Positions 2 to 26,627 of a DNA stretch of 64,000 nt are shown here, piece by piece. The stretch lies in the sequence record PP601403.1, one strand, 5' to 3'. The first letter of the stretch is position 1. The number at the start of each line of letters is the position of its first letter. The notes under the pieces are model-generated. The model was not told the origin of the DNA, did not search any database, and was given only the letters and a program-made list of their open reading frames with translations. Position numbers and translations under genes: made by a program.

Positions 2-712
2 CGTGACAACTTCTTTGCTGAAATGTCATCAATGCTTGGTAACGTTCGGATGGCTGGGTTTACTGGTTATACCATTAATGACCTACTGATGGTATTCGAT
101 AACTTGAACGAAGTACTCGATCTTACTTTGTTCGATGCTGAACAATACCGTGTGGATGATCTTTCTCTGAGTTGTGAGAACATGGGTACATCTCAGCTCG
201 GTGAGTTTGTTAGTCATGAAATCATGATGAACGTTATGGATCTGCTGATCAAGTACGGTCTGACCACAATTTCTTTCCGTGGTTCTAACTGTGATAACTT
301 CGGTGGTGACGGTGGTTTGAGCAACATTGTTATTCTTCCGTATAACGTAACATCGTTGACTGATAATGATTTTGATATGGGTTCTAAAGCAGAAGCTTTT
401 GTAACCGCACTGACTAATCAGATCTTCACCAAACTCAATGGTATCAGTATTAACCAGTTGACCCCGATTCGTTTTGATGTCCACGCAGAACTCTTTGGTA
501 CCACTACCATTAATATGTGTGTAGTAACCGAAGATAACATCTCAACCGGATTCTCCATGAATGACGCTGGATCAGTCTCTGGGATGCAATCTCGCACCTT
601 CCCGACTTTTGCTATTAACAACGCTTCCTCTATTCTGGGTAATGATTCTACCGCTATCCAGATGGGTGCCAACTTCTATAGCAACATTAACGAATACTTC
701 ACCGGCTACTAA
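2..712 (+). CDS. 5'-truncated conserved jumbo-phage protein; synteny suggests a phiKZ gp69-like (PicA/Imp1 nuclear import) protein
   Basis: The frame is open from base 2, upstream of the ATG at 23, so the gene starts before the window. The identity rests only on its position two genes before RNAP beta-C. Confidence 0.35.
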   Translation, partial: RDNFFAEMSSMLGNVRMAGFTGYTINDLLMVFDNLNEVLDLTLFDAEQYRVDDLSLSCENMGTSQLGEFVSHEIMMNVMDLLIKYGLTTISFRGSNCDNFGGDGGLSNIVILPYNVTSLTDNDFDMGSKAEAFVTALTNQIFTKLNGISINQLTPIRFDVHAELFGTTTINMCVVTEDNISTGFSMNDAGSVSGMQSRTFPTFAINNASSILGNDSTAIQMGANFYSNINEYFTGY

Positions 713-733
713 TTTTAGATGTAAGGATTTATA

Positions 734-2257
734 ATGAACCAACTTAACAGTATTTACCAATCCATGCTCAAATCCTGGGGCGTAAGTTTCACTCCCGATC
801 ACGAACTTATCCTCAATATGGCTGGTCAAGAAGTCCCAGTTAAAGTAGAAGATAAACAAGTCTACCTTCCCACCAACGATAACCTTAATGGTGTTACCAT
901 TGGTAAGGTATTCTTCCACCCTGCTTGTGAATCAGTAATGTCTAAGGAAACTGAGATCTTCAAAGTTATCCGTAAACTTACCTGTGCACGTATTTACCAA
1001 GTATTCCAACCTATCGCTCAAGTACTGTTTGCTGTAGCCGGTAAGAAGACAGGTAAAACTACTTCTGGTAAGATGTTGGAGAAACTGGAACCTTTTAAGA
1101 ACGCTTCTAAAGAAGTTAAAGAAGATGTTCTTACTCTGATCAAAGGTATTGGTATTACTCTGGAAGGTACGGGGATTGATAATCGTCTTATCAACTGGAA
1201 TCTGATCAAAGGTGGTAAAGATGATCAAGATCGCCATGTTTACTACACTGCTATTCCGGATTACCCGTATTACCTTGAACTGTGCCGAGTAGTAGCTCAA
1301 AACGATCATGTTAAACAAACAGGTCGTTTGAACTTCAATAACAGTAATGTAAGTAAAGCTGCCATGGAGTTAGTGATTTATCTATTCGAGATGGTTTTCC
1401 CATCATGCCTGGATAACACTATAGCAAGTTACTCAGTAGTGTCTCCGGATGCAGCTCGTTTAACAGCCTACCTGCACTCTTACGGTTTGGTGGTAAGTGA
1501 GCTCAATTCCCTGATCAGTAAGTTCCGTAAGGATTTTGATACCATTGGTATTTATGGTATTGAACTGGACTGGTTGACTGAACTGGATTCACTGGGTGAA
1601 TACAAAGGTCTTATACCTCCCCTGGACTACAACAACTACAATGTGACCACATCTGGTGACAATGTAGGAAGTCGCGCTCCCAGTAAAGCTGTCACTACCT
1701 TTAATCTATTCGGTGGTAACACTACTCAACAAAACCAGCAGCAACAAACCAACACAGCTGTAAAACAACCTAATGCTCCGGCGGCTCGTCCTGGTGAACA
1801 TTACATGGGGTGTGACTACACTGAGTCCAATGGTGTATTTGAGTTTAAGTTCCAAATGCCTGGTGGTTTGATCCGTTCTGTATCGATGACCGAAGATAAC
1901 CGTATTATCAATGAAATTGTAATCAACCCTGCAATGAGTGCGATGAACGGTCTGGGTAATACACCTCTCGGTGGTATGAATGATCCACGTTTGCTTATGG
2001 CTCTTGCTCAAATGCAAAACAACGGTATTCCTCCCCTGATGGGCATGGGTGGTGGTAACGGTGGTGGATTTGTTCGCGATCCTTACACCGGGCAAATGGT
2101 TCCTACCGGTGGTAATAACGGTTATAACAACAATGGTTATAACTCAGCACCGCTTGGTTCCAATGATGCTTGGGGGAATAACAACAATCAATATCAACCG
2201 ATGGATGCTTACACTGCAACTGGTGCAGGTGGTACTGTAAGTGTAAATAACTTCTAA
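734..2257 (+). CDS. Conserved phiKZ gp70-like protein with a Q/N/G/M-rich low-complexity C-terminus
   Basis: 507-aa ORF with RBS AAGGA, followed by a hairpin terminator. It sits immediately before the RNAP beta-C locus. Confidence 0.55.
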   Translation: MNQLNSIYQSMLKSWGVSFTPDHELILNMAGQEVPVKVEDKQVYLPTNDNLNGVTIGKVFFHPACESVMSKETEIFKVIRKLTCARIYQVFQPIAQVLFAVAGKKTGKTTSGKMLEKLEPFKNASKEVKEDVLTLIKGIGITLEGTGIDNRLINWNLIKGGKDDQDRHVYYTAIPDYPYYLELCRVVAQNDHVKQTGRLNFNNSNVSKAAMELVIYLFEMVFPSCLDNTIASYSVVSPDAARLTAYLHSYGLVVSELNSLISKFRKDFDTIGIYGIELDWLTELDSLGEYKGLIPPLDYNNYNVTTSGDNVGSRAPSKAVTTFNLFGGNTTQQNQQQQTNTAVKQPNAPAARPGEHYMGCDYTESNGVFEFKFQMPGGLIRSVSMTEDNRIINEIVINPAMSAMNGLGNTPLGGMNDPRLLMALAQMQNNGIPPLMGMGGGNGGGFVRDPYTGQMVPTGGNNGYNNNGYNSAPLGSNDAWGNNNNQYQPMDAYTATGAGGTVSVNNF

Positions 2258-2273
2258 ACAACAATAAGGTAGT

Positions 2274-2303
2274 CCTGTAAGTCAGCATTAGCTGACTTAC
2301 AGG
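2274..2303. terminator. Bidirectional hairpin terminator
   Basis: cctgtaagtcagc-atta-gctgacttacagg, a 13-bp stem between convergent genes. Confidence 0.8.
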
Positions 2304-2318
2304 CTATTTACTTAATCT

Positions 2319-2657
2319 TTAATTTTCTCTTCTAACTCTTGTTACCTGAATAACAGAGTTAATGTTTTCTCTAGTAACAGTCCAAATTCCTTTTAAGTGG
2401 GAGAAATCTTGATTAGGATTTTCTATCCCATTTAAATAAGAAATAGTCCAGATCATATCTTCAGGAATAAGACTATTCATTCCCCCCATACTCCTAAGTA
2501 GTTTATGAAAGTTATTACGATAAGCAAATCGTAAACTATCATCTACGAAAGGAGAGAATGAAGCTCTAGCCAAAAGGATTTCTTTACAGCTTCGAATAAT
2601 GGTTTTGTATTCTTCAGTGTAGAAAAAAGAATTACCAGAGTTCATAGAAATTGGCAT
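2319..2657 (-). CDS. Small protein, possibly T4 gp53-like/LysM-like baseplate wedge protein
   Basis: 112 aa with RBS AAGGAA. The motif AYRNNF...IWTISYLNGIENP resembles the gp53-type Y...W.I..LN.I.DP pattern. Confidence 0.4.
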   Translation of the reverse strand: MPISMNSGNSFFYTEEYKTIIRSCKEILLARASFSPFVDDSLRFAYRNNFHKLLRSMGGMNSLIPEDMIWTISYLNGIENPNQDFSHLKGIWTVTRENINSVIQVTRVRREN

Positions 2658-2693
2658 GACAAAAGTTTCCTTTTTATTAATTTTTTACAAGCC

Positions 2694-2727
2694 CTATAAT
2701 ATTTCAGACCGATATTATTAGAATGTA
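2694..2727 (+). promoter_or_regulatory. Putative early phage promoter (34-bp motif, copy 1)
   Basis: ctataatatttcagaccgatattattagaatgta aligns without gaps to five other intergenic copies. Confidence 0.7.
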
Positions 2728-2748
2728 ATTCTAGGGAGATATTTAAAA

Positions 2749-2871
2749 ATGAAAGACAAGAAACCTAAAAACCAAGTGACCTTTAGAACTGGTGGTGTCG
2801 GTGTCGGCATGAATGCCTGTCGAGCTAACTCATCTGCTGCCAGACTACAGGATCAAAAATATGAAAATTGA
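2749..2871 (+). pseudogene. Orphaned original 5' end of the RNAP beta-C gene (40-aa remnant ORF, not in the ORF track)
   Basis: RBS GGGAG. Translates MKDKKPKNQVTFRTGGVGVGMNACRANSSAARLQDQKYEN*; 24 of 26 core residues match the N-terminus of 3948..6047. Confidence 0.85.
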
Positions 2872-4043
2872 TGAAAGACTACTTGCTTATAAACCAATTT
2901 CAGTTACTCTTAACTTTGATTGGGAAAATACCTCATTTGATCAAAGAGCTCAAATGCGTTGGGACTATATTCAGGAACAGAAAAAGAAAGATCCTAATTA
3001 TGTTGGATATGATTTTCCTGAACATTTCCGTAGCACACATGGTGGAAGAACGAAAGAAACTAAATACAGCGTGACTTTTGACCAACTAATAAGTACCATA
3101 GGTCAGTTAATCAGTGCCAGATATGAAGATGAACTTTTCGTTACCTTTGGAGGTACTAGTCACAAAGGCTATTTAGTAACAGCTATTAATGAAGACGACA
3201 AAAATCAAATGGCGCAGGTTCATCGTATTGTAGCATGTACCTTTATCCCATTGCCAATGTCATTAATTAATAAAAGAGAAAAAGCTATAATCAACCATAA
3301 AAATGACATTGTTACATGTAACCAGGTATCTAATTTAGAGTGGACTACCCTTAGAGGTAACACCATTAAAGCTGTGGAAACAGGTCTAATAGATTCAACT
3401 TCCTTTAAACTTACGGTGACACAACCGGGTCCGTTACTGGGTAACGAATATTATTTCTTTAGTAAAGGAGATTTGGTCAAACAAGGTTTCTCTCATTCTC
3501 CTGTTTGGGAATCTGTTAGAACAGGTTCTGTATATCTATGTGGAACGTGGTCAGAAGTCTCTAAAGAGGAGATGGAAAATAAACCTAGAGGTGTTCCAGA
3601 TAAAGACCTAGTTATTATTAGGGATAAACGTACAGGAAGATCTGATTCCTCTGCTACAGTAGGAACTATAGTTACTGAGGGTCCTTGCAAGGGAGCGAAA
3701 TTCGCCCTTTATGGTGGTTCGCAACTAAAAGAATATGGTTTTGATCAGAGTAGTTTAAATAAAGCCATACGTGGAGGACTTGGGGTTGTCGCTGGTTGCA
3801 CCTGGGAACGTATGACAAGAGAGGAAGCTGTCAATATTCCGATTGGTTTAACGCCTGAACAATTAGACCACATTAACAAAACCAGATTAAAGAAATCAAA
3901 ATAACATTCAAAGTCCACTGGTTTACAGCGGGCTATTTGGAGGAACAATGCAAAAGAAACCGAATAATCAGGTAACCTTTAGAACAGGCGGGGTTGCCGT
4001 AGGAATGAACGCTAGTCGTGCTAACTCATCGGCGGCGAGATTG
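2848..4043 (+). mobile_element. HNH cassette carrying a replacement 5' end for the RNAP beta gene
   Basis: The HNH ORF is flanked by two protein-level copies of the same 26-codon RNAP segment (2770..2847 and 3966..4043). Confidence 0.75.
2861..3904 (+). CDS. Free-standing HNH homing endonuclease 1 (likely start MKIDERLL at 2861, not 2813)
   Basis: VHRIVA...INHKND...N..SNLEW HNH motif plus two C-terminal G...GTW/GCTW-type repeats. RBS CAGGA precedes 2861. Confidence 0.85.
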   Translation: MKIDERLLAYKPISVTLNFDWENTSFDQRAQMRWDYIQEQKKKDPNYVGYDFPEHFRSTHGGRTKETKYSVTFDQLISTIGQLISARYEDELFVTFGGTSHKGYLVTAINEDDKNQMAQVHRIVACTFIPLPMSLINKREKAIINHKNDIVTCNQVSNLEWTTLRGNTIKAVETGLIDSTSFKLTVTQPGPLLGNEYYFFSKGDLVKQGFSHSPVWESVRTGSVYLCGTWSEVSKEEMENKPRGVPDKDLVIIRDKRTGRSDSSATVGTIVTEGPCKGAKFALYGGSQLKEYGFDQSSLNKAIRGGLGVVAGCTWERMTREEAVNIPIGLTPEQLDHINKTRLKKSK

Positions 4044-6079: not shown

Positions 6080-8104
6080 ATGAAAACAATTAGATTAAGA
6101 GAATTTGCTGGACTTGATCAAGTTGCAATGCTCAACATGACAGAGCGTCGTTATAAAGTAGAAGTGATCGACGACCAAGGGGAGAAAGTAATCACTGATA
6201 GTTGGTTATTAGCTATCAACTGGTACACGCTTATTCCTCATCGTTACTTCCATGATGAACCTTATCACATTGACGAGGTAATCGTTCTGAAGTCCAAGGA
6301 AGGACGTCAGAGCTTTATTGACGATGACAAGTTGAAACATCCGGTGGATAACTTCCTAGGTCGTATTATGCCTAAGAACGACGATCCTGCTTTCTACGAT
6401 ATGATTAAACAATTGATCTTTGTTTATCATAATGCTTGTCATAACTATTTGTGCGTTAAATCTGAACATGGCGTTGTATCGGCACGTTCTATGGATGTGC
6501 TCCATGTGCTGAGAAATCCAAAGATCGCTGATCTGAAGAAACGTGTTCAATCTGGTCAAACTTGTATGGCTGATGGTGCTAAGGAGTTTGAACAGATCAT
6601 GATGACTGAACCTGATTTTGATAAATCAGTATTCGGGTTGTTGTATCGTACTCGCTCAGTATCAAGTGTTCAGTCATTCCAGTTGGTAATTGCTCGTGGT
6701 GACGTAACTGATCTTAATGGTACTATCCTACCTAATACCATTATGGAATCGTACGCTGATGGCATTACTAACCTTGCTGATAGTCTAGCAGACTCTAAAG
6801 GTGCTGGTTTCTCGTTGATCTCTAACGGACAAGCACTACAAGACTCTGAGTGGTTCCACAAGAAGATTCACAACGTAGCCCAGGTAGTTAAAGGGATTGA
6901 CTACCAAAAGGACTGTGGGAGCACTACAGGGACGATTGTAAAGATTGTCTCTAAAGAGTTTAAACAGTCTTTGGCTGGGAAGTGGCGTATTATGGAAGAT
7001 GGTTCTTTGGAACTATTGATCGGTAAAGCGTTGGATAAGATCGAAACTGGAGAAAAGATCACTTATCGTTCTGTTGCTTGGTGTAGACATGGTAGAACAG
7101 GAAGACCGTGTTCTGTGTGTTTTGGTAAAATGGAATCAGCTCTACCGTTTAACCCATATACCAGAAGAGGAGCAGTACCTGGATTGTTCTACGGTTCTAC
7201 TCTTGCTGAACCTATTGGTCAGTCTATCCTTAAGACTAAACACCGGATCGGTTCTGCATCTGCTAAAGGGTTTGTGGTTAACCGAGCTGATGCGGATTAC
7301 ATCACCGGTGATGAGTCTGGTGATTACATCTACTTTAAGAAAGAGATCCTTAATGAAGATTCTGATCCATATTTGATTTTGGATAAGGAAACACAACAGG
7401 ACTTCTCTGACTTTAAGTTTATGGAAAACTTGGAAGATATTGATCTGTCCCGTGTTCTTAGAACATATGAAACAATTAAACTGCGGGTAAGTATTTCTAA
7501 CCCTATGTTTGAGAGTAAGAAAGCAGTTCATTATCCAATCATCACTACTACTGTTGCGAGTCGCGACGCAAGGATGACCAGAGCACTTGTAGAGTACTTG
7601 TTGGAACAACCTATAGAAGAGGAGGGTAAAACCTTTAAGATCTCCCTGAAGGGGTTTGATGCTAAGGAACCAGCATTTGAGTTACCGCAAGTAAACGAGG
7701 ACTTGGATGCCTATCGTAAGAGGGTAGAAAACAAGTTTAAGTTTGATGAAGTTAAGAACCGTTGGGATCACTGGATTACTCCTGAAATCTTTGGTGAGTA
7801 CGTAGTATCTCTTTGGAAGGTAATTGATGAGAAGTACAAAGGTGCTAATATCATCATGACCGATATCTTCCTCTGGGCTTGTGCCGCTATTGATCCTAAT
7901 AACTTGGATTACGGATTACCTGGTGAAACTGACAAACGTGTATTTGTTTCACTGCATGAGTCCATTATCCATGGTGGAATGAGTAATGCACTAGTATACG
8001 GTTATCAGAAAGAGAGCTTAATTAACGAACCATATCGGTTTCTGGTTAAGAACCGTAAGAGTGGTGTATTGGAAGCCTTCATGAATCCAATTGCAATTAA
8101 GTAA
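6080..8104 (+). CDS. rpoC: Non-virion RNA polymerase beta' subunit, C-terminal part (phiKZ gp74-like)
   Basis: Bridge-helix-like GAGFSLISNGQALQDSEWFHKKIH, DCGS, Zn-site C...CSVCFG, and trigger-loop-like LAEPIGQSILKTKH. Confidence 0.88.
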   Translation: MKTIRLREFAGLDQVAMLNMTERRYKVEVIDDQGEKVITDSWLLAINWYTLIPHRYFHDEPYHIDEVIVLKSKEGRQSFIDDDKLKHPVDNFLGRIMPKNDDPAFYDMIKQLIFVYHNACHNYLCVKSEHGVVSARSMDVLHVLRNPKIADLKKRVQSGQTCMADGAKEFEQIMMTEPDFDKSVFGLLYRTRSVSSVQSFQLVIARGDVTDLNGTILPNTIMESYADGITNLADSLADSKGAGFSLISNGQALQDSEWFHKKIHNVAQVVKGIDYQKDCGSTTGTIVKIVSKEFKQSLAGKWRIMEDGSLELLIGKALDKIETGEKITYRSVAWCRHGRTGRPCSVCFGKMESALPFNPYTRRGAVPGLFYGSTLAEPIGQSILKTKHRIGSASAKGFVVNRADADYITGDESGDYIYFKKEILNEDSDPYLILDKETQQDFSDFKFMENLEDIDLSRVLRTYETIKLRVSISNPMFESKKAVHYPIITTTVASRDARMTRALVEYLLEQPIEEEGKTFKISLKGFDAKEPAFELPQVNEDLDAYRKRVENKFKFDEVKNRWDHWITPEIFGEYVVSLWKVIDEKYKGANIIMTDIFLWACAAIDPNNLDYGLPGETDKRVFVSLHESIIHGGMSNALVYGYQKESLINEPYRFLVKNRKSGVLEAFMNPIAIK

Positions 8105-8113
8105 GGAAATACA

Positions 8114-8290
8114 ATGAAACATACCGTAGAACAAATTGTAACCTTGGCAGGATCCACCCGTAAACAGTTTGGCGATAAATGGGTTCCTGCTCGCCCAACT
8201 GATGGTAGTGGTCTGATTACAAAGATCAAACATGCCTGGTTGGTCATCACTGGTAAAGCCGACATTGTGGTTTGGCCTTGTAACCAATAA
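8114..8290 (+). CDS. 58-aa hypothetical protein (below the ORF-track cutoff)
   Basis: RBS AAGGA. MKHTVEQIVTLAGSTRKQFGDKWVPARP...KHAWLVITGKADIVVWPCNQ, directly followed by a terminator. Confidence 0.7.
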   Translation: MKHTVEQIVTLAGSTRKQFGDKWVPARPTDGSGLITKIKHAWLVITGKADIVVWPCNQ

Positions 8291-8300
8291 ATAACTTACC

Positions 8301-8327
8301 CCTACCTAGACATAAAGTCTAGGTAGG
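8301..8327. terminator. CTACCT-family hairpin terminator
   Basis: cctacctagac-ataaa-gtctaggtagg. Confidence 0.75.
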
Positions 8328-8345
8328 TTTATTTGGAGTATAGTT

Positions 8346-8693
8346 ATGAAACGTCTTTACCTGATCAAATCTGGAACTGACTTACTTCCTTATTTGATGC
8401 CAAAGTTAAATCAAGTTCACGTACCTAAAAAGAAACGTGCTATAATGAAAGCAGGAACCGATCTTGTTCTTATTTATAGTAAAGGGAAATGTCTTGTACA
8501 GCGAGCAGATATCCGGACTCCCTATCGGCACATGATTTTCACGTTTAATATTACAGATTGGAATAAGTATATTTACCCTATGGAACTTACCTGTCTTTCC
8601 ACACAGGGGCTAATAACAGATCAAGTAGATGGATTGGCTTGGGTTCAACCTGAGACATTTAAACCAAATAGTGTAAACGTTAAAACGTATTAA
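8346..8693 (+). CDS. Hypothetical protein
   Basis: 115-aa ORF with RBS GGAG. Confidence 0.7.
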   Translation: MKRLYLIKSGTDLLPYLMPKLNQVHVPKKKRAIMKAGTDLVLIYSKGKCLVQRADIRTPYRHMIFTFNITDWNKYIYPMELTCLSTQGLITDQVDGLAWVQPETFKPNSVNVKTY

Positions 8694-14579: not shown

Positions 14580-15884
14580 TTATTTAACTATTCTATTTAA
14601 ATCAAGCTTAACCATTTTCAACTGAGAGCTATGCATCCCCTTCATACGCTGAAGCATGATGTGGGTGAAGATAAGAACTGTTTCGGCAGAAACACGGTTT
14701 TGAATAGCGCCTAGCTTTTCTCCGCAGCAAACTTTACAAAGGTTAAAGTCACCTTGTTCGCAGAACTGGGGAACTCTAAATTGCAGTGGTTTACCTAACA
14801 GTGCTTTATCAGCTTTAGTTAATACTTTTAGACCATCGGTAGTTTTATAATAACCACCTACCCAAGATCCGAAACTAAAGTCATTAAGTGTTACTGTTTC
14901 TGTTCTTGGAGTTTGGCAATCAGTATCAATGGCTTCAATACGGTCAGTAAGAAGGATCATTACTTTAACTTCTGCACCACCTTCACCGGTTGCATTACCA
15001 CGGTCATAGGAACCAGAAATAGCAGTATTGATATAAGCTGGATAGTTATCTTTATCCCAACCTTCATTCAACGAGTTACGAAGTAGTTGATACTTACCAG
15101 TATTAAAATCAGGAACCATATCAAATACAACAAACATTTTCTTACGGGCGTTATCAATGAACTTCTTATCAATGAAAAAGTCTTTAGACGGCCCGTTGTA
15201 TTGAATAGAGGCATCAAGTGCTACAACTTCGTCAATGACTTTAGCTACAGCTGCTGCATCATTGAGCTTATTCTCTTTCTCTAGTTCATTAAGTAGTTTA
15301 TCTCGAAGTTTGATTACATCAGGATGAACTGTAAGAACATCTAAGGAAGATGCTTTAACAAATACATCATTAAGACCTTCTAAGTAATCAAGGTTCTTGG
15401 TGATGTTAAGACATTGAGTGACGGATGCTTTATCAGAGGGAATAGTTTCACCTTCTTTAGGATCATCTACCATGATAGAGTCAATAAGACCACGTACTGT
15501 ACCAGAGGTAATTGGTCCATTGATATAACTTGCCGCATGACCAACTGATTCAAAGAAAACGACTAGGTTTACTAACAACAATCCTACAGTCGTTTCAATC
15601 TTCTCTTTAACGAATTCATGAACTGACATATCGACTGTGATTTTATCGTTCTTATTAAAGAGAGCTTTATCGTACTGCGCGTGCTCTATAACAACTTTCT
15701 TACCTTCTTTAAGGAAGTATACTTCTTTAGTGTCAGGATCTCGTAGAAGCGCGTAGGGAACTGTTTTGAGCTTGTTATTGTTAGCTACAGAAGGAGTTAC
15801 AATAGAGAATACTGAAAGTAGAAATGATTTACGATTGTAAGCTCTATTATTAATTGCTTCAAAGAGATAATCAAACTTGTTCAT
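14580..15884 (-). CDS. rpoC: Virion RNA polymerase beta' subunit fragment (phiKZ gp80-like)
   Basis: Bridge-helix-like GSYDRGNATGEGG, DTDCQT, FRVPQFC...LCKVCCG Zn site, and MKGMH. Confidence 0.85.
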   Translation of the reverse strand: MNKFDYLFEAINNRAYNRKSFLLSVFSIVTPSVANNNKLKTVPYALLRDPDTKEVYFLKEGKKVVIEHAQYDKALFNKNDKITVDMSVHEFVKEKIETTVGLLLVNLVVFFESVGHAASYINGPITSGTVRGLIDSIMVDDPKEGETIPSDKASVTQCLNITKNLDYLEGLNDVFVKASSLDVLTVHPDVIKLRDKLLNELEKENKLNDAAAVAKVIDEVVALDASIQYNGPSKDFFIDKKFIDNARKKMFVVFDMVPDFNTGKYQLLRNSLNEGWDKDNYPAYINTAISGSYDRGNATGEGGAEVKVMILLTDRIEAIDTDCQTPRTETVTLNDFSFGSWVGGYYKTTDGLKVLTKADKALLGKPLQFRVPQFCEQGDFNLCKVCCGEKLGAIQNRVSAETVLIFTHIMLQRMKGMHSSQLKMVKLDLNRIVK

Positions 15885-16794: not shown

Positions 16795-17487
16795 ATGAGC
16801 AAAAAGGCCCAACAAAATGCAGCTGCAAAACGCGCTCGTCGTAACACTGCGAGTAAAGTAAAACGTAGTGATCGTAACGCTAAAGGTGTCAAGGTTCTAC
16901 CTGGTCGCAGACCCGCTCGTGGTAACGAAGCACTGACTGCATTGGCACAAGCTCTCTCTCGTTCTAACCTTGATGATCCACTCCAGTACATCCTTGATGG
17001 CGGTAAAAGTGAAGGTGAATTCAATCCGCAATCATTGATCAAAACCTCCCGTAAAGCTGTAGGCGAAGTTTACAAACTGTTTAGTTATGTAGTGTTGGCT
17101 GAACGTTTGGTACAACAGAAAGCTTTTGTACATGACTTTGCTTGCGATCTGGATCGTGTTACTAATGAACTGATCGAGATTGATCGTCAAGTTATGCGTT
17201 TGCCTAAACTGGCAGAAATTGATCTGGAATCTTTCACCATCGACATGCTTGATATTGGTGGTTACGTAGAGAACCTGGCTGATCAACTTTATACCGAGAT
17301 TGAAGCACTTGAGAAACACAGCTTCGTTATTGAAGATCGCCTCAATAAAGCAGCTCATGATTTCCAAGTTTCTCACCCAGAAGTTACCGAACAAGATGCT
17401 CGTTTGGTAATCATGGAAACTATTTCTCAGGAACGTGTTAATAAGTTCCGTCAACTGCAACAACAAGCCGAAACTGCTGAGGTTTAA
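16795..17487 (+). CDS. Conserved hypothetical protein with an Arg/Lys-rich N-terminal arm
   Basis: 230 aa with RBS AAGGAG; N-terminus KKAQQNAAAKRARRNTASKVKR. Confidence 0.75.
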   Translation: MSKKAQQNAAAKRARRNTASKVKRSDRNAKGVKVLPGRRPARGNEALTALAQALSRSNLDDPLQYILDGGKSEGEFNPQSLIKTSRKAVGEVYKLFSYVVLAERLVQQKAFVHDFACDLDRVTNELIEIDRQVMRLPKLAEIDLESFTIDMLDIGGYVENLADQLYTEIEALEKHSFVIEDRLNKAAHDFQVSHPEVTEQDARLVIMETISQERVNKFRQLQQQAETAEV

Positions 17488-17489
17488 TA

Positions 17490-19124
17490 ATGTCTGAAGA
17501 AATTCAAACCCAAGAGTCCGCTAAACCTATTAAACGGATTAAGCCGATCGAATATCTGCGAGAAGCCATCATCCAAGGTAAAGAAGCTAATCAAGCTTAC
17601 TCTCTTCCTTTATTCCTCGGTAGCTTGACTTCTCAACACGAAGCTATCCTTACTACTGCTACTGTGTACGCGCAACTTAAACAAGTTGACGATGATATTA
17701 ACAGTGGTAACAGTAATATCTCTGAAAGTGTTCGTAACTCACTGCGTGTTAAGTTTGAAGAACTGCAAGAGAAACATTTCCCAGAAGTAGAACAAGATGA
17801 GCTTGGGGTAATGTTGATCAACTACTTCCAGTTCTATCAACGTGGGTTGGATCGTGTACTAGCTCGGGAAGATAATCAAGAATTCATCGATCCATCAGTT
17901 CTGATGAACACATTCCCATTCCGCAATGAACGTATTGGTATTATCAACCCGATTAAACCACAAGTAAAAGCTAAAGACTCTGTACGTGACCGTATGCGTC
18001 GCAGTAAGCTTAAGCTTGCCAATGAACCTGATACCTTCTCCTTGATGTTGGTTAACTCTCGTGTATTCTTGAAGATGAAAGTTCCTACTCCATTGGATAT
18101 GGTTCTGCTCATTAACAAGATCACTACGGAACTTAAAGGTTACGGTGAACGTTATCGCGTTTCCTCTATGCATCTGGAACGAGCACTGATTACTCGTATC
18201 CTGGTGAGCTTCATGTTGGAACGTGCTACCTATTGGTCTGTTGCCGATATTCTTGATGCAGAAGAACTGTTCAAGATCATCAAGTTCGAAGACGTTGGCA
18301 TTATCGCAACTACTCTTCTTGCTAATGCTGCTCCTAAAGGTGTGAGTTACACTATCTCCTGTTTGGCTGATAAATGTGACTATAACGAGACTAATCTGAT
18401 TGACCCAGCTAACCTTGTGGTTTATGACGATATTCGTCTACCGCAAGTGTATAAAGATCAAATCAGTGCTATCTTGAACACCGGTAAGAAATTTACCATT
18501 GAAGAACTCAAAGCCTCAGATGTTCCTTACACTGACTTTGAAGGTAATGTGATCGATACTGTTGTTAAGCACGACAACGGAGCTGGTGAAGTTCATATCA
18601 AGTCACCTTATCTGGCTGATTACTTTACCTGCTTTGATAACATGGCCGAGCAGATCAACCCAGAACTTCGTGAACTTGCTGTGCAATTCCCTAATCAGAA
18701 AGTGTACGCAACTAAACGTGCTGAAGTAATGGGTTCTATCCGAATGGCTGAATATCTTCAGTGGTTTGATAAAACCGTTACTTTGCCGGAACCTGGCGAA
18801 GATGGAGAACCTGAAGTAATTAGTCGTCAGGAAGATCCTAAAGGGTTTGATCAAGGTCTCCTTGATATGTTCAATAGCGACGATAACTTGCTGCGTGATG
18901 CACTGGATAAAGTCATTAAGAGTGTACCTAAGTTGACTTATGTCTACATCGGGATTCCTGATGATCACTGTCCTAAGTGCAAAACCCGTGCTAATGACGT
19001 AATCAAGGAGATTAATGGAGGTTTCACTCCTATTGATCCGATTCTGAATTTTTTCGACCATACCCGGATGTTGATAACGATGCGACGAGATCTCGTGACT
19101 TTACAAGAGGAAATTCTTTCCTAA
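17490..19124 (+). CDS. Putative tail/baseplate-hub assembly chaperone (T4 gp26-like / gpG-like) with CxxC-type motifs
   Basis: 544 aa with SCLADKC and HCPKC cysteine pairs. A -1 slippery heptamer lies 23 codons before the stop. Confidence 0.5.
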   Translation: MSEEIQTQESAKPIKRIKPIEYLREAIIQGKEANQAYSLPLFLGSLTSQHEAILTTATVYAQLKQVDDDINSGNSNISESVRNSLRVKFEELQEKHFPEVEQDELGVMLINYFQFYQRGLDRVLAREDNQEFIDPSVLMNTFPFRNERIGIINPIKPQVKAKDSVRDRMRRSKLKLANEPDTFSLMLVNSRVFLKMKVPTPLDMVLLINKITTELKGYGERYRVSSMHLERALITRILVSFMLERATYWSVADILDAEELFKIIKFEDVGIIATTLLANAAPKGVSYTISCLADKCDYNETNLIDPANLVVYDDIRLPQVYKDQISAILNTGKKFTIEELKASDVPYTDFEGNVIDTVVKHDNGAGEVHIKSPYLADYFTCFDNMAEQINPELRELAVQFPNQKVYATKRAEVMGSIRMAEYLQWFDKTVTLPEPGEDGEPEVISRQEDPKGFDQGLLDMFNSDDNLLRDALDKVIKSVPKLTYVYIGIPDDHCPKCKTRANDVIKEINGGFTPIDPILNFFDHTRMLITMRRDLVTLQEEILS

Positions 19125-19561
19125 GTAGCGATCAGTCTGGTCAACTCCAACCAAGGTTCAAAGAGCAGAGTGATAAACTGCTCTTTGAAACCTACCGCAA
19201 CATGCCACAAAGTAAATTAGAATTGTTGATTACAGAACGCAGAGCTTATATGATGAAGTTTGGTTGGGTTGCTGATAGAGAACCTTTAAGTAACACAATC
19301 AAATATAATCGAGCTCGCAGAGACTCTAGTCATCAGTTCAGTGCGGCTGCGGTTGGGGAGATGTTCGGGTTTAGAGAATATGGTGAGATCTTACCGCTTA
19401 AAGATTTCTTAACTCTTCCATGTAACGTATTAGAAGATATCATTGATTCTGTGGCTGTTGGTAAACGTAAAGCTAAAGAAGTAGCTGACCGTATGACCAA
19501 GAAAAACAAAGGAATCCCTGATGCGGAACAACTTCTAAAACAACTTGAGAATAAGGATTGA
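19037..19561 (+). CDS. Frameshift-accessed C-terminal extension (gpT/gp51-like); ORF track starts it at ATG 19202
   Basis: The frame is open for 51 codons upstream of ATG 19202, which has no Shine-Dalgarno. C-terminal LKDFLTLP..VLEDII resembles tail-chaperone T-region motifs. Confidence 0.6.
   Translation, partial: SDSEFFRPYPDVDNDATRSRDFTRGNSFLSSDQSGQLQPRFKEQSDKLLFETYRNMPQSKLELLITERRAYMMKFGWVADREPLSNTIKYNRARRDSSHQFSAAAVGEMFGFREYGEILPLKDFLTLPCNVLEDIIDSVAVGKRKAKEVADRMTKKNKGIPDAEQLLKQLENKD
19049..19055 (+). promoter_or_regulatory. Candidate programmed -1 ribosomal frameshift site T TTT TTC
   Basis: The X XXY YYZ heptamer is correctly phased in the 17490 frame (AAT TTT TTC). The -1 frame is closed by TGA at 19034 and then open to 19561. 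Confidence 0.7.
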
Positions 19562-19564
19562 TGT

Positions 19565-20113
19565 ATGTCTAAAGCACACGTACCGCCTGTAGTGGAACAA
19601 AGTAAAACTGCTGTAGCTCAACAGCAAGCAGTTGTCGAGAAGATGGATACAAGTGTAATGGTTCCTACTGAGAAGGTTCCTACCACACCTGCGACTATTT
19701 ACCAAAATGGTATTGATAACTTTGTAAAATTCATCAAAGGTGAATTTAAATCTGCTAGTTTGCAAGAACGCAGTAACTATCAGTGTGAGTTTATGGGAAC
19801 TATCGTTCAGATGCTCTCTATTGACCCCGAAGAAGTAGCCAAGGTACTTAACCACTTTATCGAAGTGATTCTTACCAACCCGGTGCAGTTTGGTCAAAGT
19901 GAGATCTTTGCTCCACTGTACGTAGTTGAGAAAGAGAAAATGAAACCTGCTGACGAAATCCTTCGTTATAAGCAGTTCATGACCTTCATGGTAAGTTTGG
20001 CTAAGAACGCTCAGAACCGTCAACGTTTTGTAGCTAATGTTGATATGCGTAAATTGCTGAGCTATTTCCCTAAGAAGGCAGCTGACAATTTGCAAGAGTA
20101 TTGCTTCCGTTAA
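19565..20113 (+). CDS. Conserved hypothetical protein
   Basis: 182-aa ORF with RBS AAGGA, followed by a terminator. Confidence 0.75.
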   Translation: MSKAHVPPVVEQSKTAVAQQQAVVEKMDTSVMVPTEKVPTTPATIYQNGIDNFVKFIKGEFKSASLQERSNYQCEFMGTIVQMLSIDPEEVAKVLNHFIEVILTNPVQFGQSEIFAPLYVVEKEKMKPADEILRYKQFMTFMVSLAKNAQNRQRFVANVDMRKLLSYFPKKAADNLQEYCFR

Positions 20114-23854: not shown

Positions 23855-24853
23855 ATGTCAATTAAAACATTAACTGAAATACTAGGTCTTTCTCTTGAAT
23901 TGAAAGATTATGAAGAACGTGTTCAAAAGAGATATGACTACATTCAAGAACAATTAGAGAAAGATCCTGAGTTTGTAGCTTATGACTATCTGGAATATTG
24001 GCATGGTAGAGCTGATATTCACTATCTGTTTAAAGAAATTATTATTAGTTCTAAGGGAGACTATTATCAGGAGAAGAACGGTGTATGGTCAGAAGCTGAG
24101 CGCTTTAAAACTAAAGCATATCTAGAAAAGGGGTTCAGGTTAGTCGGACACGGGCCAAAAACTTTCCAAACACACAGGGCGGTTGGATCAGTTTTTATTC
24201 CTAAGTACGAACACCTTAAAGACGTACCTTATTGGAAACTTGAGGTAAACCATAAAGATGGCGATAAACACAATCCAGATTTCTCTAACCTAGAATGGAT
24301 GACTAAATCTGAAAACACTCAACACGCTCTTGAAAATGGACTCCAGACATCTGGGTTAAATGACCCTAATACTATTCCTTATCTAGCTACAGTCGTTATG
24401 GAAGGAAAGTATAAAGGTCAACAGTTCGTACTTGCCGGAACCGCTGCATTTGAAAAGGAGGGGATCTCTAGAAGTTCTGTTAGAGATCAATCAGAGGGTA
24501 AATTCCGCGCTATTGCTGGATGTACTTGGAAAGTTATCACTAAAGAGGAAGCTAAAGATTATCCGCAAGGAACCCCAGAGGGATTTATGACATTCCTTAA
24601 ATCCAATAGCGCTTTATCAGATCCTAAGGTTAAACCAGTGTTAGGGGTGGTGCAAAATGGAGCTTTTAAAGGGCATCATTTCTGTTTGTACGGCGGGAAA
24701 CACATAGCCGAGAATGGGTTTGGTCAAGCTCATGTATCAAGACACGCTAAACACAATAAAGTTTATAAAGGAGTATTATGGAAGTATATAACACAGGAAG
24801 AAGCTACTAACTATCCAAAAGGATTGGATAAAGAGATATACGAGACTTTATAA
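23855..24853 (+). CDS. Free-standing HNH homing endonuclease 3
   Basis: THRAVG...VNHKDGDKHN..SNLEWMTKSENTQHA, a near-canonical HNH motif. Paralog of HNH1 and HNH2. Confidence 0.88.
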   Translation: MSIKTLTEILGLSLELKDYEERVQKRYDYIQEQLEKDPEFVAYDYLEYWHGRADIHYLFKEIIISSKGDYYQEKNGVWSEAERFKTKAYLEKGFRLVGHGPKTFQTHRAVGSVFIPKYEHLKDVPYWKLEVNHKDGDKHNPDFSNLEWMTKSENTQHALENGLQTSGLNDPNTIPYLATVVMEGKYKGQQFVLAGTAAFEKEGISRSSVRDQSEGKFRAIAGCTWKVITKEEAKDYPQGTPEGFMTFLKSNSALSDPKVKPVLGVVQNGAFKGHHFCLYGGKHIAENGFGQAHVSRHAKHNKVYKGVLWKYITQEEATNYPKGLDKEIYETL

Positions 24854-24896: not shown

Positions 24897-26627
24897 TTAT
24901 GCTGCTTCTTTTTCTTGTTGAATAAAAGGCTTAACCGTATTGGTGTAGAAAGTAGAGATATCAGAAATAGTCGGCATCCCGTAAATCACGTTGCACAACT
25001 CTACAGCGTTAGCCTGGGGACTAGACGCGTAGTTGATCCCAACTTTACGATATTCCATTCTATCAAGACCTTCTATCTGACAAACCTCCAATCTAGTTGT
25101 TTTGTTAGAAACATTTAGAGCTACTGTTGAGTTCGGATATGCAGCTGCCACATCTATGTCGTCTACGCTGTGCCTTCCTTTACTCTTCCATGACGGTAAT
25201 CCGGCATAGATTGTTTTCCCATTCTCTTCGTTAAGCTCTGCGTGGAGTAGAGCGATCCAATCTCGAAGGTCTGGTTTAATAGATTTGAACTCATCCTCTT
25301 TCTGACGTCCTACTGTTCCCCATACATAACCATTTTCAAGCGCTATGAAAGAGAGCTTATCAGAAATCATACTTGGTTGAGACTGATACGACTTCAACTC
25401 GGAAGATGTCACTAGAGATGGCAAAGACAACGAGTAGTCATTAGTTACTCTATTAATGTCCTCAATTACCCAGTTATCTCGAATGTTGTACATCGCATAC
25501 AAGTATGGTTCGTTCTTGAGCATCCATTTGTGCCACTCAGCAGAACCAGCTTGTAGATGTCCACCAATCTCCGTATAGAGCTTACCTTCCACTTTCTCGT
25601 GTTGAGACGTAGCTTGCAGAGAGTAGGACTCACGTTTACCCTGAGGAGCACGTTTAATAGCGTAGAATGACATCCCATCAAACCACTGCCACTTAGCAGG
25701 AGCTTGAACTACTGGGAACTTCTCATGGTTATCAAGGGGAGTTTTAGATCCATCTACTTTGGTTTTAAACTGTCTTCCTGGGAAGAAAAAGTAATCTTGA
25801 TAAACACCTGGAACTGAAGGATCAGAGTAAACTTCTTTTAAGTTAAAGTTCTCATTAAGCAGCGCATTCTGGTTAGCTTCCATATCAAAGCCAGCGTTCC
25901 AGGATACAATGAAATCTGGTCCTTGTCTGTGCCAGAACTGAATATTGTTATACACTACTTTACCTGGAGTATCTTCTAAAACATAATGGATTTTGACATC
26001 ATGTTTTTCGATATATTCCTTTAGGTATTTCTCTTCATATTCCTTAAGGGTTTTAAGGATGTGTTCATCAGAGTGACCATGGAATATAGAACGAAGTCCA
26101 GACCAATAGACAACTTTTTCAAAGGTGGTAGAAGCCATACAAACAGGACCAGTGGTGTTGTCTGGCATGATGAATGTTTCTACGTCATATGCAGCTACTG
26201 AATAAGCTTCTTGGGGTTGGTGATCAGGGAACTTATCGTAGTATTTTTGCTTATAGACTACGGGGACAGTTTCTTGACATCCGAATACGAAGGGGTTGGA
26301 TTTTAGATCATAGAGTTGAGCAGAACGATCTGGCCGTCCGAATAGTACTTTAGAGATATTAGTAGCGAGTCTAGCTTCATTAGAAGAGTACTTGTCACAT
26401 TTGGATAATTCAATATAATCTTTCTTATCTTTGAAATTACGGTGTTTGGGTTTTACTATATAGAAATCACGTTTATAGTTTTCTATTTTAGCTAATCTAC
26501 TTTTACGAGTTCCATCAGCATAAATATCAGTAATTTTAGCTGTGAGGAGATCTGAATTAGAATCGTATTGATTAAAGGAAAGGTAGGCGTGTTTGCAAAC
26601 ACGCGCGACAATTTTGTTCTCTTCCAT
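24897..26627 (-). CDS. Split family-B DNA polymerase, exonuclease plus partial polymerase half (phiKZ gp82-like)
   Basis: ExoI AYDVETF, ExoII SWNAGFDM, ExoIII YNIRD, and polymerase motif A DIDVAAAYPN near the C-terminus. Confidence 0.85.
   Translation of the reverse strand: MEENKIVARVCKHAYLSFNQYDSNSDLLTAKITDIYADGTRKSRLAKIENYKRDFYIVKPKHRNFKDKKDYIELSKCDKYSSNEARLATNISKVLFGRPDRSAQLYDLKSNPFVFGCQETVPVVYKQKYYDKFPDHQPQEAYSVAAYDVETFIMPDNTTGPVCMASTTFEKVVYWSGLRSIFHGHSDEHILKTLKEYEEKYLKEYIEKHDVKIHYVLEDTPGKVVYNNIQFWHRQGPDFIVSWNAGFDMEANQNALLNENFNLKEVYSDPSVPGVYQDYFFFPGRQFKTKVDGSKTPLDNHEKFPVVQAPAKWQWFDGMSFYAIKRAPQGKRESYSLQATSQHEKVEGKLYTEIGGHLQAGSAEWHKWMLKNEPYLYAMYNIRDNWVIEDINRVTNDYSLSLPSLVTSSELKSYQSQPSMISDKLSFIALENGYVWGTVGRQKEDEFKSIKPDLRDWIALLHAELNEENGKTIYAGLPSWKSKGRHSVDDIDVAAAYPNSTVALNVSNKTTRLEVCQIEGLDRMEYRKVGINYASSPQANAVELCNVIYGMPTISDISTFYTNTVKPFIQQEKEAA

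Follow-up and report, generated by a model that had tools for sequence, protein, structure and literature searches.

The locus and its proposed slip site

Aeromonas phage ACP1 (PP601403.1), a jumbo phage with a genome of 236 kb, belongs to the genus Ferozepurvirus, and the taxonomy line of its record gives Caudoviricetes and Ferozepurvirus only. The window considered here is the whole 64,000-nucleotide (nt) stretch that was analyzed, in which each position equals that of the record minus 124000; over 17490..19561, it matches the ACP1 record with 100% identity. Within it, a gene for a protein of 544 amino acids (aa) at 17490..19124 is followed by a short open reading frame (ORF) that ends at 19561. 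Our results indicate that the first of these is very likely a recoded gene, from whose single start codon two proteins would be made by means of a -1 frameshift at a slippery heptamer, T_TTT_TTC, that lies shortly before its stop codon (Table 1).

Sequence comparison identifies the gene at 17490..19124 (gene 1) as the orthologue of phiKZ gp77, PhiPA3 gp074, 201phi2-1 gp136, and EL gp47. The assignment follows from a chain of tblastn matches that connects the 544-aa protein to PhiPA3 gp074, together with the PhiPA3 record, which equates its gp074 with phiKZ gp077, 201phi2-1 gp136, and EL gp47. In this broad sense, the original prediction, which had been made from the letters of the DNA, was right to call the phage phiKZ-like. 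Gene 1 matches PHROG 4585 (E = 2.4e-86), while the piece encoded in the -1 frame belongs to PHROG 19747; both groups are listed as having unknown function.

The zero frame reads AAT TTT TTC at 19047..19055, which places codon 522 in the A site, and the heptamer is followed by 22 sense codons and a TAA at 19122..19124. Closed by a TGA just upstream of the heptamer, the -1 frame is then free of stops from 19037 up to the stop at 19559..19561, and the first ATG, GTG, or TTG in this open stretch is the ATG at 19202. A Shine-Dalgarno sequence (GGAG, GAGG, or AGGA) was not found in the 20 nt upstream of that ATG, unlike the next gene, at 19565, which does have an AAGGA upstream. All of this bears out the anatomy that had been described at the outset, including the phase of the heptamer, the missing start before 19202, and the 522 and 168 aa that the two frames would contribute. 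The window's ORFs of 100 aa or more contain 51 X_XXY_YYZ heptamers in phase, and apart from two in a spurious ORF, the one at 19049..19055 is alone in leading into a -1 frame that stays open for 100 codons or more. As a recoding event, the site is a canonical -1 frameshift site. The spurious ORF (7074..7376, 100 aa) is nested out of frame in a 674-aa gene (6080..8104), and the long open -1 frame of its two heptamers is simply the frame of the real gene.

Every GenBank record that we examined annotates two genes at the locus, and none annotates a slippage join. The records of ACP1, AVP1, and pAEv1810 start the downstream ORF at the equivalent of 19250, those of PS1 and PS2 start it at the equivalent of 19202, and the annotated starts in more distant genomes scatter over ~210 nt. 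Within the literature searched, full-text queries on frameshifting with phiKZ, jumbo phages, baseplate hub, and Chimalliviridae returned no description of such an event. Literature matches for "gp77" and "gp136" turned out to concern other genes under different numbering schemes. It appears, then, that a lineage-wide -1 frameshift in the gp77 family is real and has so far gone undescribed.

Table 1. Features of the probable recoded locus and its surroundings in the ACP1 window
Feature	Position	Strand	Basis
Gene 1, zero-frame product of 544 aa	17490..19124	+	ORF list; GenBank coding sequence ACP1_0149; PHROG 4585
TGA closing the -1 frame just 5' of the heptamer	19034..19036	+	Sequence
Slippery heptamer T_TTT_TTC in X_XXY_YYZ phase, proposed site of a tandem tRNA-Phe slip	19049..19055	+	Sequence; conservation
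Continuation in the -1 frame, 168 codons plus stop, including the ORF annotated from 19202 or 19250	19055..19561	+	Open frame; tblastn; alignment; PHROG 19747
Dual-coding overlap: last 22 zero-frame codons plus stop, and first codons of the -1 frame	19055..19124	+	Conservation of both frames
Stretch annotated as intergenic, evolving as -1-frame coding sequence	19125..19201	+	Substitution pattern; protein-level conservation across the stretch
Upstream neighbor, 230 aa, syntenic with phiKZ gp78 and PhiPA3 gp075	16795..17487	+	Conserved gene order
Downstream neighbor, 182 aa, PHROG 14374 (function unknown)	19565..20113	+	Own Shine-Dalgarno sequence and ATG
phiKZ gp80-like RNA polymerase beta-type subunit	14580..15884	-	PHROG 2962
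Putative HNH endonuclease	23855..24853	+	GenBank annotation
DNA polymerase	24897..26627	-	PHROG 3011

Conservation and selection at the site

We compared the locus among 33 genomes or contigs, namely 5 Ferozepurvirus genomes, 13 OBP-like loci, 5 distant relatives, the phages KTN4, Goslar, SPN3US, RSF1, PCH45, and PhiPA3, and 4 contigs from IMG/VR. An in-phase run of six T's was present in 33 of 33, as was an open -1 frame that reaches the downstream ORF, and the full X_XXY_YYZ heptamer was present in 32. A conserved start codon in the -1 frame was found in none of the 33. The proposal of a programmed -1 frameshift had named an alignment of relatives as a check, and such a comparison shows that the in-phase heptamer and the open -1 frame after it are conserved across the lineage and far beyond it.

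The arrangement can be followed from near-identical genomes to very divergent ones. The closest relatives of ACP1 (AVP1, pAEv1810, PS1, and PS2) share 93-95% identity with it over 17490..19561 (2,072 bases). In these five independently sequenced Ferozepurvirus genomes, the site is identical, with six T's in each, and a 281-nt stretch around it is 98% conserved, compared with 93-95% for the gene pair as a whole. Searches with tblastn recovered homologues of the 544-aa protein in 69 phage records. When the -1 piece was translated alone from 19055, it matched from its first residue onward in ~15 genera, and each match began exactly 66 nt before the match to gene 1 ended. The 13 OBP-like loci represent ~9 genera (CF8, AerS_266, ZPAH34, N1M2, D9, Kc263, AhC3_1, pEt-SU, Survivor, Yubaba, OBP, SXP01, and AH04), and their gene 1 proteins are 41-51% identical to that of ACP1. 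All 13 have an in-phase T_TTT_TTC (T_TTT_TTA in Kc263) 22 codons before the stop and a -1 frame that stays open as far as the end of the downstream ORF, in which the first possible start wanders over ~100 nt. The same arrangement recurs in EL, RisingSun, Miami, Aphrodite1, and Vibrio phage 2 TSL-2019, where the identity of gene 1 falls to ~22-27%.

Beyond these genomes, a profile search retrieved 833 protein clusters of the gp77 family, and tblastn with a distant representative added 222 phage records, including the phiKZ group, PhiPA3, 201phi2-1, Goslar, SPN3US, RSF1, and PCH45. In KTN4 (of the species phiKZ), Goslar, SPN3US, RSF1, and PCH45, an in-phase T_TTT_TTT or T_TTT_TTC lies 12-44 codons before the stop, and the -1 frame stays open for 165-173 further codons. 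The four additional contigs that a search of IMG/VR yielded all have the arrangement as well.

At the protein level, we aligned 152 members of the family (cluster representatives of 440-620 aa plus ACP1). A pair of phenylalanines occupies the slip column in 146 of them, and all of the proteins end 8-39 residues later. A C-terminal fusion of the two pieces in a single ORF was found in none of the 152. The few family members that reach 645-690 aa have their additional residues at the N terminus and not at the C terminus. Three proteins of 686-690 aa (from phiEaH2, a metagenomic "baseplate protein," and P0108) at first seemed to be possible single-ORF fusions. P0108, the other long search matches, and SPN3US gp39 were ruled out as fusions, with the extra length located at the N terminus; in phiEaH2 and in the metagenomic protein (687 aa) it is presumably N-terminal too, by analogy with SPN3US. 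Size also varies among orthologues: the SPN3US protein (1877..3847 of its locus) has 656 aa against 544 in ACP1, with the surplus at the N terminus, and the PCH45 protein (566..2380 of its locus) has 604 aa, with part of the surplus in a longer zero-frame tail that runs 44 codons past the slip. Thus, no lineage was seen in which the ORFs are fused and none in which the arrangement has been lost, which is what would be expected if both isoforms are needed.

The nucleotide sequence around the site carries marks of selection that go beyond the encoded amino acids. We examined the site in a codon alignment of 17 genomes and tallied its codons in 22. Although the amino acid specified by the codon before the T run varies (N, T, S, A, G, L, or V), the third base of that codon is T in 21 of the 22 genomes. 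The first phenylalanine codon is TTT in all 22, though most of these genes favor TTC; in OBP, for example, only 3 of the 25 phenylalanine codons elsewhere in the gene are TTT. Immediately upstream, third-position entropies of 0.98-1.9 bits were measured for codons whose residues (Thr, Pro, Ile, Asp, and Pro) are conserved. Taken as independent events, the two invariances (of the preceding T and of TTT) have naive probabilities of ~1e-11 and 1e-12. Downstream of the heptamer, the third positions of the second and fourth zero-frame codons are an invariant C in the 17-genome alignment, which covers the OBP/EL group, and in the -1 frame each of these two bases begins an invariant proline codon (Pro-x-Pro).

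The pattern of substitution changes where the zero frame ends. Across five independent pairs of closely related genomes, the dual-coding overlap contains few substitutions and has no third-position bias. In the "intergenic" gap, by comparison, 47, 38, and 111 substitutions fall on the first, second, and third positions of -1-frame codons, respectively (chi-square of ~48 with 2 degrees of freedom, calculated by hand), and conservation of the -1-frame protein runs on across 19125..19201. Together, these data show that purifying selection acts on the slip signal and on the -1 frame.

A further element lies at the zero-frame stop. In the window at 19107..19124 and at the equivalent place in 12 OBP-like loci, an invariant AGAGGA...TCTTTCC can form a 4-bp hairpin (alignment columns 60-74). 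Its bases are conserved and show no covariation, which dual coding probably explains, as the same bases specify Arg-Gly-x-Ser-Phe-Leu in the -1 frame and Glu-Glu-x-Leu-Ser-stop in the zero frame, though it may also play a role in termination or pausing.

Two proposed isoforms and competing explanations

Our interpretation of the locus is as follows. Most ribosomes would read through T_TTT_TTC and stop 22 codons later, releasing the 544-aa protein. On some ribosomes, with one tRNA-Phe in the P site and another in the A site, the pair would move back by one base from TTT TTC to T TTT TT, and translation would continue in the -1 frame for 168 codons, up to 19561. The result would be a protein of ~690 aa whose first 522 residues are common to both isoforms. 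An AlphaFold model of the 544-aa protein (predicted local distance difference test [pLDDT] score, 74.7; predicted template modeling score, 0.74) ends in a helix formed by residues 517-543, and the slip would therefore replace the last 22 residues of that helix. In the long isoform, the helical tail would be swapped for a proline-rich and probably flexible stretch of ~50 aa followed by a mainly helical segment of ~115 aa. By virtue of the slip, the downstream ORF (19202 or 19250..19561) would be the C-terminal part of the long isoform and thus no independent gene.

The ribosomal nature of the slip, its efficiency, and the function of the protein are matters that we infer, and several observations count against parts of this interpretation. 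Stimulatory elements, such as a hairpin or pseudoknot on the 3' side or a Shine-Dalgarno-like sequence on the 5' side, are common at -1 sites but not obligatory. A Shine-Dalgarno-like element was absent from the usual distance upstream of the heptamer, and RNAalifold recovered only two invariant 4-bp helices without covariation downstream of it. The ACP1 segment 3' of the site folds no better than shuffled sequence (z = +0.8), and with a mean folding z-score of +0.19 over 22 genomes, no conserved stimulatory structure was detected on that side. Slippage may be inefficient because no stimulatory element was found, and the ratio of long to short protein is probably fixed by the slippery run by itself, at a low or modest value. 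In PhiPA3, the run of six T's is kept but is preceded by a G (G_TTT_TTT; 4036..4042 of its locus), so that the heptamer is missing its first T. This hints that slippage in the P site only, or polymerase stuttering, could suffice there. In addition, the -1 ORFs of the group that contains phiKZ, PhiPA3, Goslar, SPN3US, and RSF1 are only marginally similar to those of the OBP/EL type (hhalign probability, 8%; P = 0.004); the two types align collinearly, and their orthology is positional. Finally, the -1 piece could be modeled only poorly (pLDDT, 47, too low for a fold search), with ~50 disordered residues followed by helices. Apart from these points, one genome departs from the others in its folding: just 3' of the heptamer, Goslar (3539..3608 of its locus) has the sole markedly stable fold among the 22 (-25.1 kcal/mol; z = -2.95).

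An argument can be made that the slip belongs to transcription rather than translation, with RNA polymerase stuttering on the T run and releasing a fraction of mRNAs of altered run length, in which both ORFs share one frame and which would have the same protein outcome. The conserved core of the site is indeed a homopolymer, with six or seven T's in 33 of 33 genomes, and it is the run, not the full heptamer, that PhiPA3 has kept. The failure to find a ribosomal stimulator fits this alternative as well, and these phages use their own unusual multisubunit polymerases, with a gene for an RNA polymerase beta-like subunit nearby. Yet, runs of six T's are short for efficient stuttering, and most genomes have six T's and then a C rather than the longest possible run, which is a mild argument against it. 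The run is also always in the X_XXY_YYZ phase that is required by tandem tRNA slippage, an argument that is weak because the conserved Phe-Phe dictates the same phase. On balance, we regard transcriptional slippage as improbable.

We give a slightly lower chance to the conventional view, according to which there are two separate genes without recoding, the second being translated from 19202, from a noncanonical start, or by reinitiation after the upstream stop, and the T run being kept for the sake of Phe-Phe. Two genes are what all of the GenBank records examined annotate, the ATG at 19202 exists, and Phe-Phe is among the most conserved features of the family. Nevertheless, protein-level conservation of the -1 frame already begins at the slip site, before the zero frame has stopped and before any start codon occurs, and the gap has the third-position bias of a coding -1 frame. 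The first possible start varies widely, lying 261 nt past the slip site in the phiKZ-type phage KTN4, and the ATG at 19202 lacks a Shine-Dalgarno sequence. Moreover, the TTT codon and the T that precedes the run are more constant than the encoded amino acids would require. Least credible, with a negligible chance of being correct, is that an ordinary gene has been split by a sequencing error or by a recent frameshift mutation. A homopolymer is a classic place for miscalls of length, and the original prediction had named such an error as something that would undo it. Against this, the same arrangement occurs in all 33 genomes or contigs, sequenced independently in many laboratories and on many platforms, and the aligned family offers not one long ORF in 152. 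A sequencing error is excluded because the six T's are common to five independent Ferozepurvirus genomes and to all of the distant relatives. A -1 frameshift during translation of gene 1 is the explanation that we favor.

Possible function and significance of the gp77 family

Several known systems invite comparison with the frameshift proposed for gene 1. In lambda (gpG/gpGT), in P2 (gpE/E+E'), and in the conserved tail-assembly chaperone genes of long-tailed phages at large, ribosomes that slip into the -1 frame shortly before an ORF ends make a second protein that starts with the same residues as the first, and G-type proteins are small and encoded immediately 5' of the tape-measure gene. 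The gp77 family resembles these pairs in that its predicted slip lies in a heptamer close to where the ORF ends, the N terminus would be shared, the ratio of products would be fixed by the slip, the arrangement has outlasted sequence similarity, and a strong stimulatory structure is not obligatory. It differs from them in the 522-aa length of its shared part, its polymerase neighbors, its lack of sequence or fold similarity to the chaperones, and an extension for which sequence searches detected no relative outside the lineage. In architecture, the closest parallel is with frameshifts of the T7 10A/10B type, where ribosomes that change frame only a few codons short of the stop in a long ORF produce an isoform with a longer C terminus. 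However, the proteins made in this way are capsid or tail proteins of the virion, and the paper on the Goslar virion does not name the gp77 homologue. The dnaX gene of Escherichia coli likewise uses a -1 slip at an X_XXY_YYZ heptamer to make two isoforms (tau and gamma), but it has flanking stimulators, of which none were found here, and its slip shortens the protein instead of lengthening it. T4 offers nested products of another kind. In its record (7803..8429 of the T4 locus, minus strand), gene 26 is annotated with a second product, 26', in the same frame. A member of the family to which the fold matches point thus also has two nested products (26 and 26'), but the second is a nested in-frame coding sequence and not the result of a frameshift.

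The original prediction had labeled the locus a tail-assembly chaperone pair of the G/GT type, and this label is not supported. There is no adjacent tape-measure gene, the size of the shared part differs, and neither Pfam, NCBIfam, PDB, nor Foldseek returned a match to such a chaperone that would indicate homology. The prediction had itself cautioned that no tape-measure gene is adjacent, and the neighbors are in fact polymerase genes. The recoded gene sits, among genes of unknown function, between the gene for a beta-like subunit of the virion RNA polymerase and the DNA polymerase gene, rather than in a tail module. This neighborhood is kept in relatives, where the conserved gene order is gp80-like (RNA polymerase subunit), gp79-like, gp78-like, and gp77-like. 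The gene at 19565..20113, which lies outside the recoded gene, is also syntenic in OBP-like phages.

A second suggestion, that the proteins resemble the T4 gp26/gp51-type hub chaperones, fared better for one part of the locus than for the other. When the model of the gene 1 product was searched with Foldseek against BFVD, a collection of predicted viral structures, the top matches were uncharacterized jumbo-phage proteins (E = 1e-17 to 1e-5). The next matches (E = 1.6e-4 to 2e-2) were proteins of 250-285 aa, with target-normalized TM-scores of ~0.48, that carry the database-given names "Baseplate hub assembly protein, bacteriophage T4-like," "Baseplate hub assembly chaperone," and "Baseplate hub subunit." A "tail assembly chaperone" appeared only once in the Foldseek list, at E = 1.4. 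The likeness of the 544-aa protein to gp26 and gp51 is thus a weak one, suggested at the level of fold by predicted structures so named; in sequence, only a Cys-Pro-x-Cys-Lys motif is shared with T4 gp51. The downstream motif that had been cited in the same context has no such standing, as hhalign detected no similarity between the -1 piece and T4 gp51 or gp26, and in sequence searches the piece resembles nothing known. As a separate observation, the gene 1 protein has four invariant cysteines (C291, C296, C494, and C497) in two pairs that are far apart in the sequence, which suggests a putative zinc site.

Other results leave a role in hub assembly weakly founded. Searches of Pfam, NCBIfam, and PDB with the sequences of both pieces and with alignments found nothing, and Foldseek of the gene 1 model against PDB gave no match better than E = 0.3; no solved structure of the PF12322 family turned up in the PDB search. 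While gp26 and gp51 of T4 (NC_000866) match PF12322 (T4_baseplate) at 1e-64 and 4e-52, respectively, none of 16 members of the gp77 family matched any Pfam entry, even at E values of up to 10. Comparison of the 152-member profile with gp51 and gp26 by hhalign was not significant (probability, 3%), nor was that of another gene 1 alignment (6.5% for gp51 and 4% for gp26). Moreover, the gp77-family protein is twice as long as its T4 counterparts, and polymerase genes, not hub or other tail genes, lie beside it. Some records carry labels that imply a function: a "ZipA-like cell division protein" is backed by no tool result, and "baseplate protein" agrees only with the weak fold matches. Lastly, the paper on the Goslar virion, which combines cryo-electron microscopy with mass spectrometry, does not mention gp81 or gp82 in its text or supplements, assuming that its numbering follows the locus tags. 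This is compatible with an assembly factor that is not part of the virion, and it proves nothing.

Judging from the weak fold resemblance of the 544-aa part, the likeliest function of the gp77-family protein would be that of an assembly factor for the tail baseplate hub. Based on predicted structures, this is a fold-level lead and not a case of membership in the PF12322 family. It is tempting to go further and propose that the short and long isoforms are the missing assembly-chaperone pair for the baseplate hub or tail of phiKZ-like (chimallivirus-type) phages, that is, a functional analog of G/GT that has a gp26/gp51-like fold, is encoded away from the tape-measure gene, and has its stoichiometry set by frameshifting. 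We consider this extended version rather unlikely. If it were true, the 168-aa extension would be a module that docks onto a partner in the hub or onto the tape measure.

The nucleus-forming jumbo phages related to phiKZ are now among the most intensively studied of all phages. Even so, in all of the records examined, this locus is annotated as two unrelated hypothetical genes, the second of which has an almost random start. If our interpretation of the frameshift is correct, every genome of the lineage encodes an isoform of ~690 aa that is missing from proteome databases, structure sets, lists of core genes, and maps of essentiality, and the short downstream "gene" is not a gene. The recoding signal would then be among the oldest conserved features of the family, having been kept while protein identity fell to ~22%. 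In addition, the frameshift provides a concrete and testable way into a core gene that has no assigned function.

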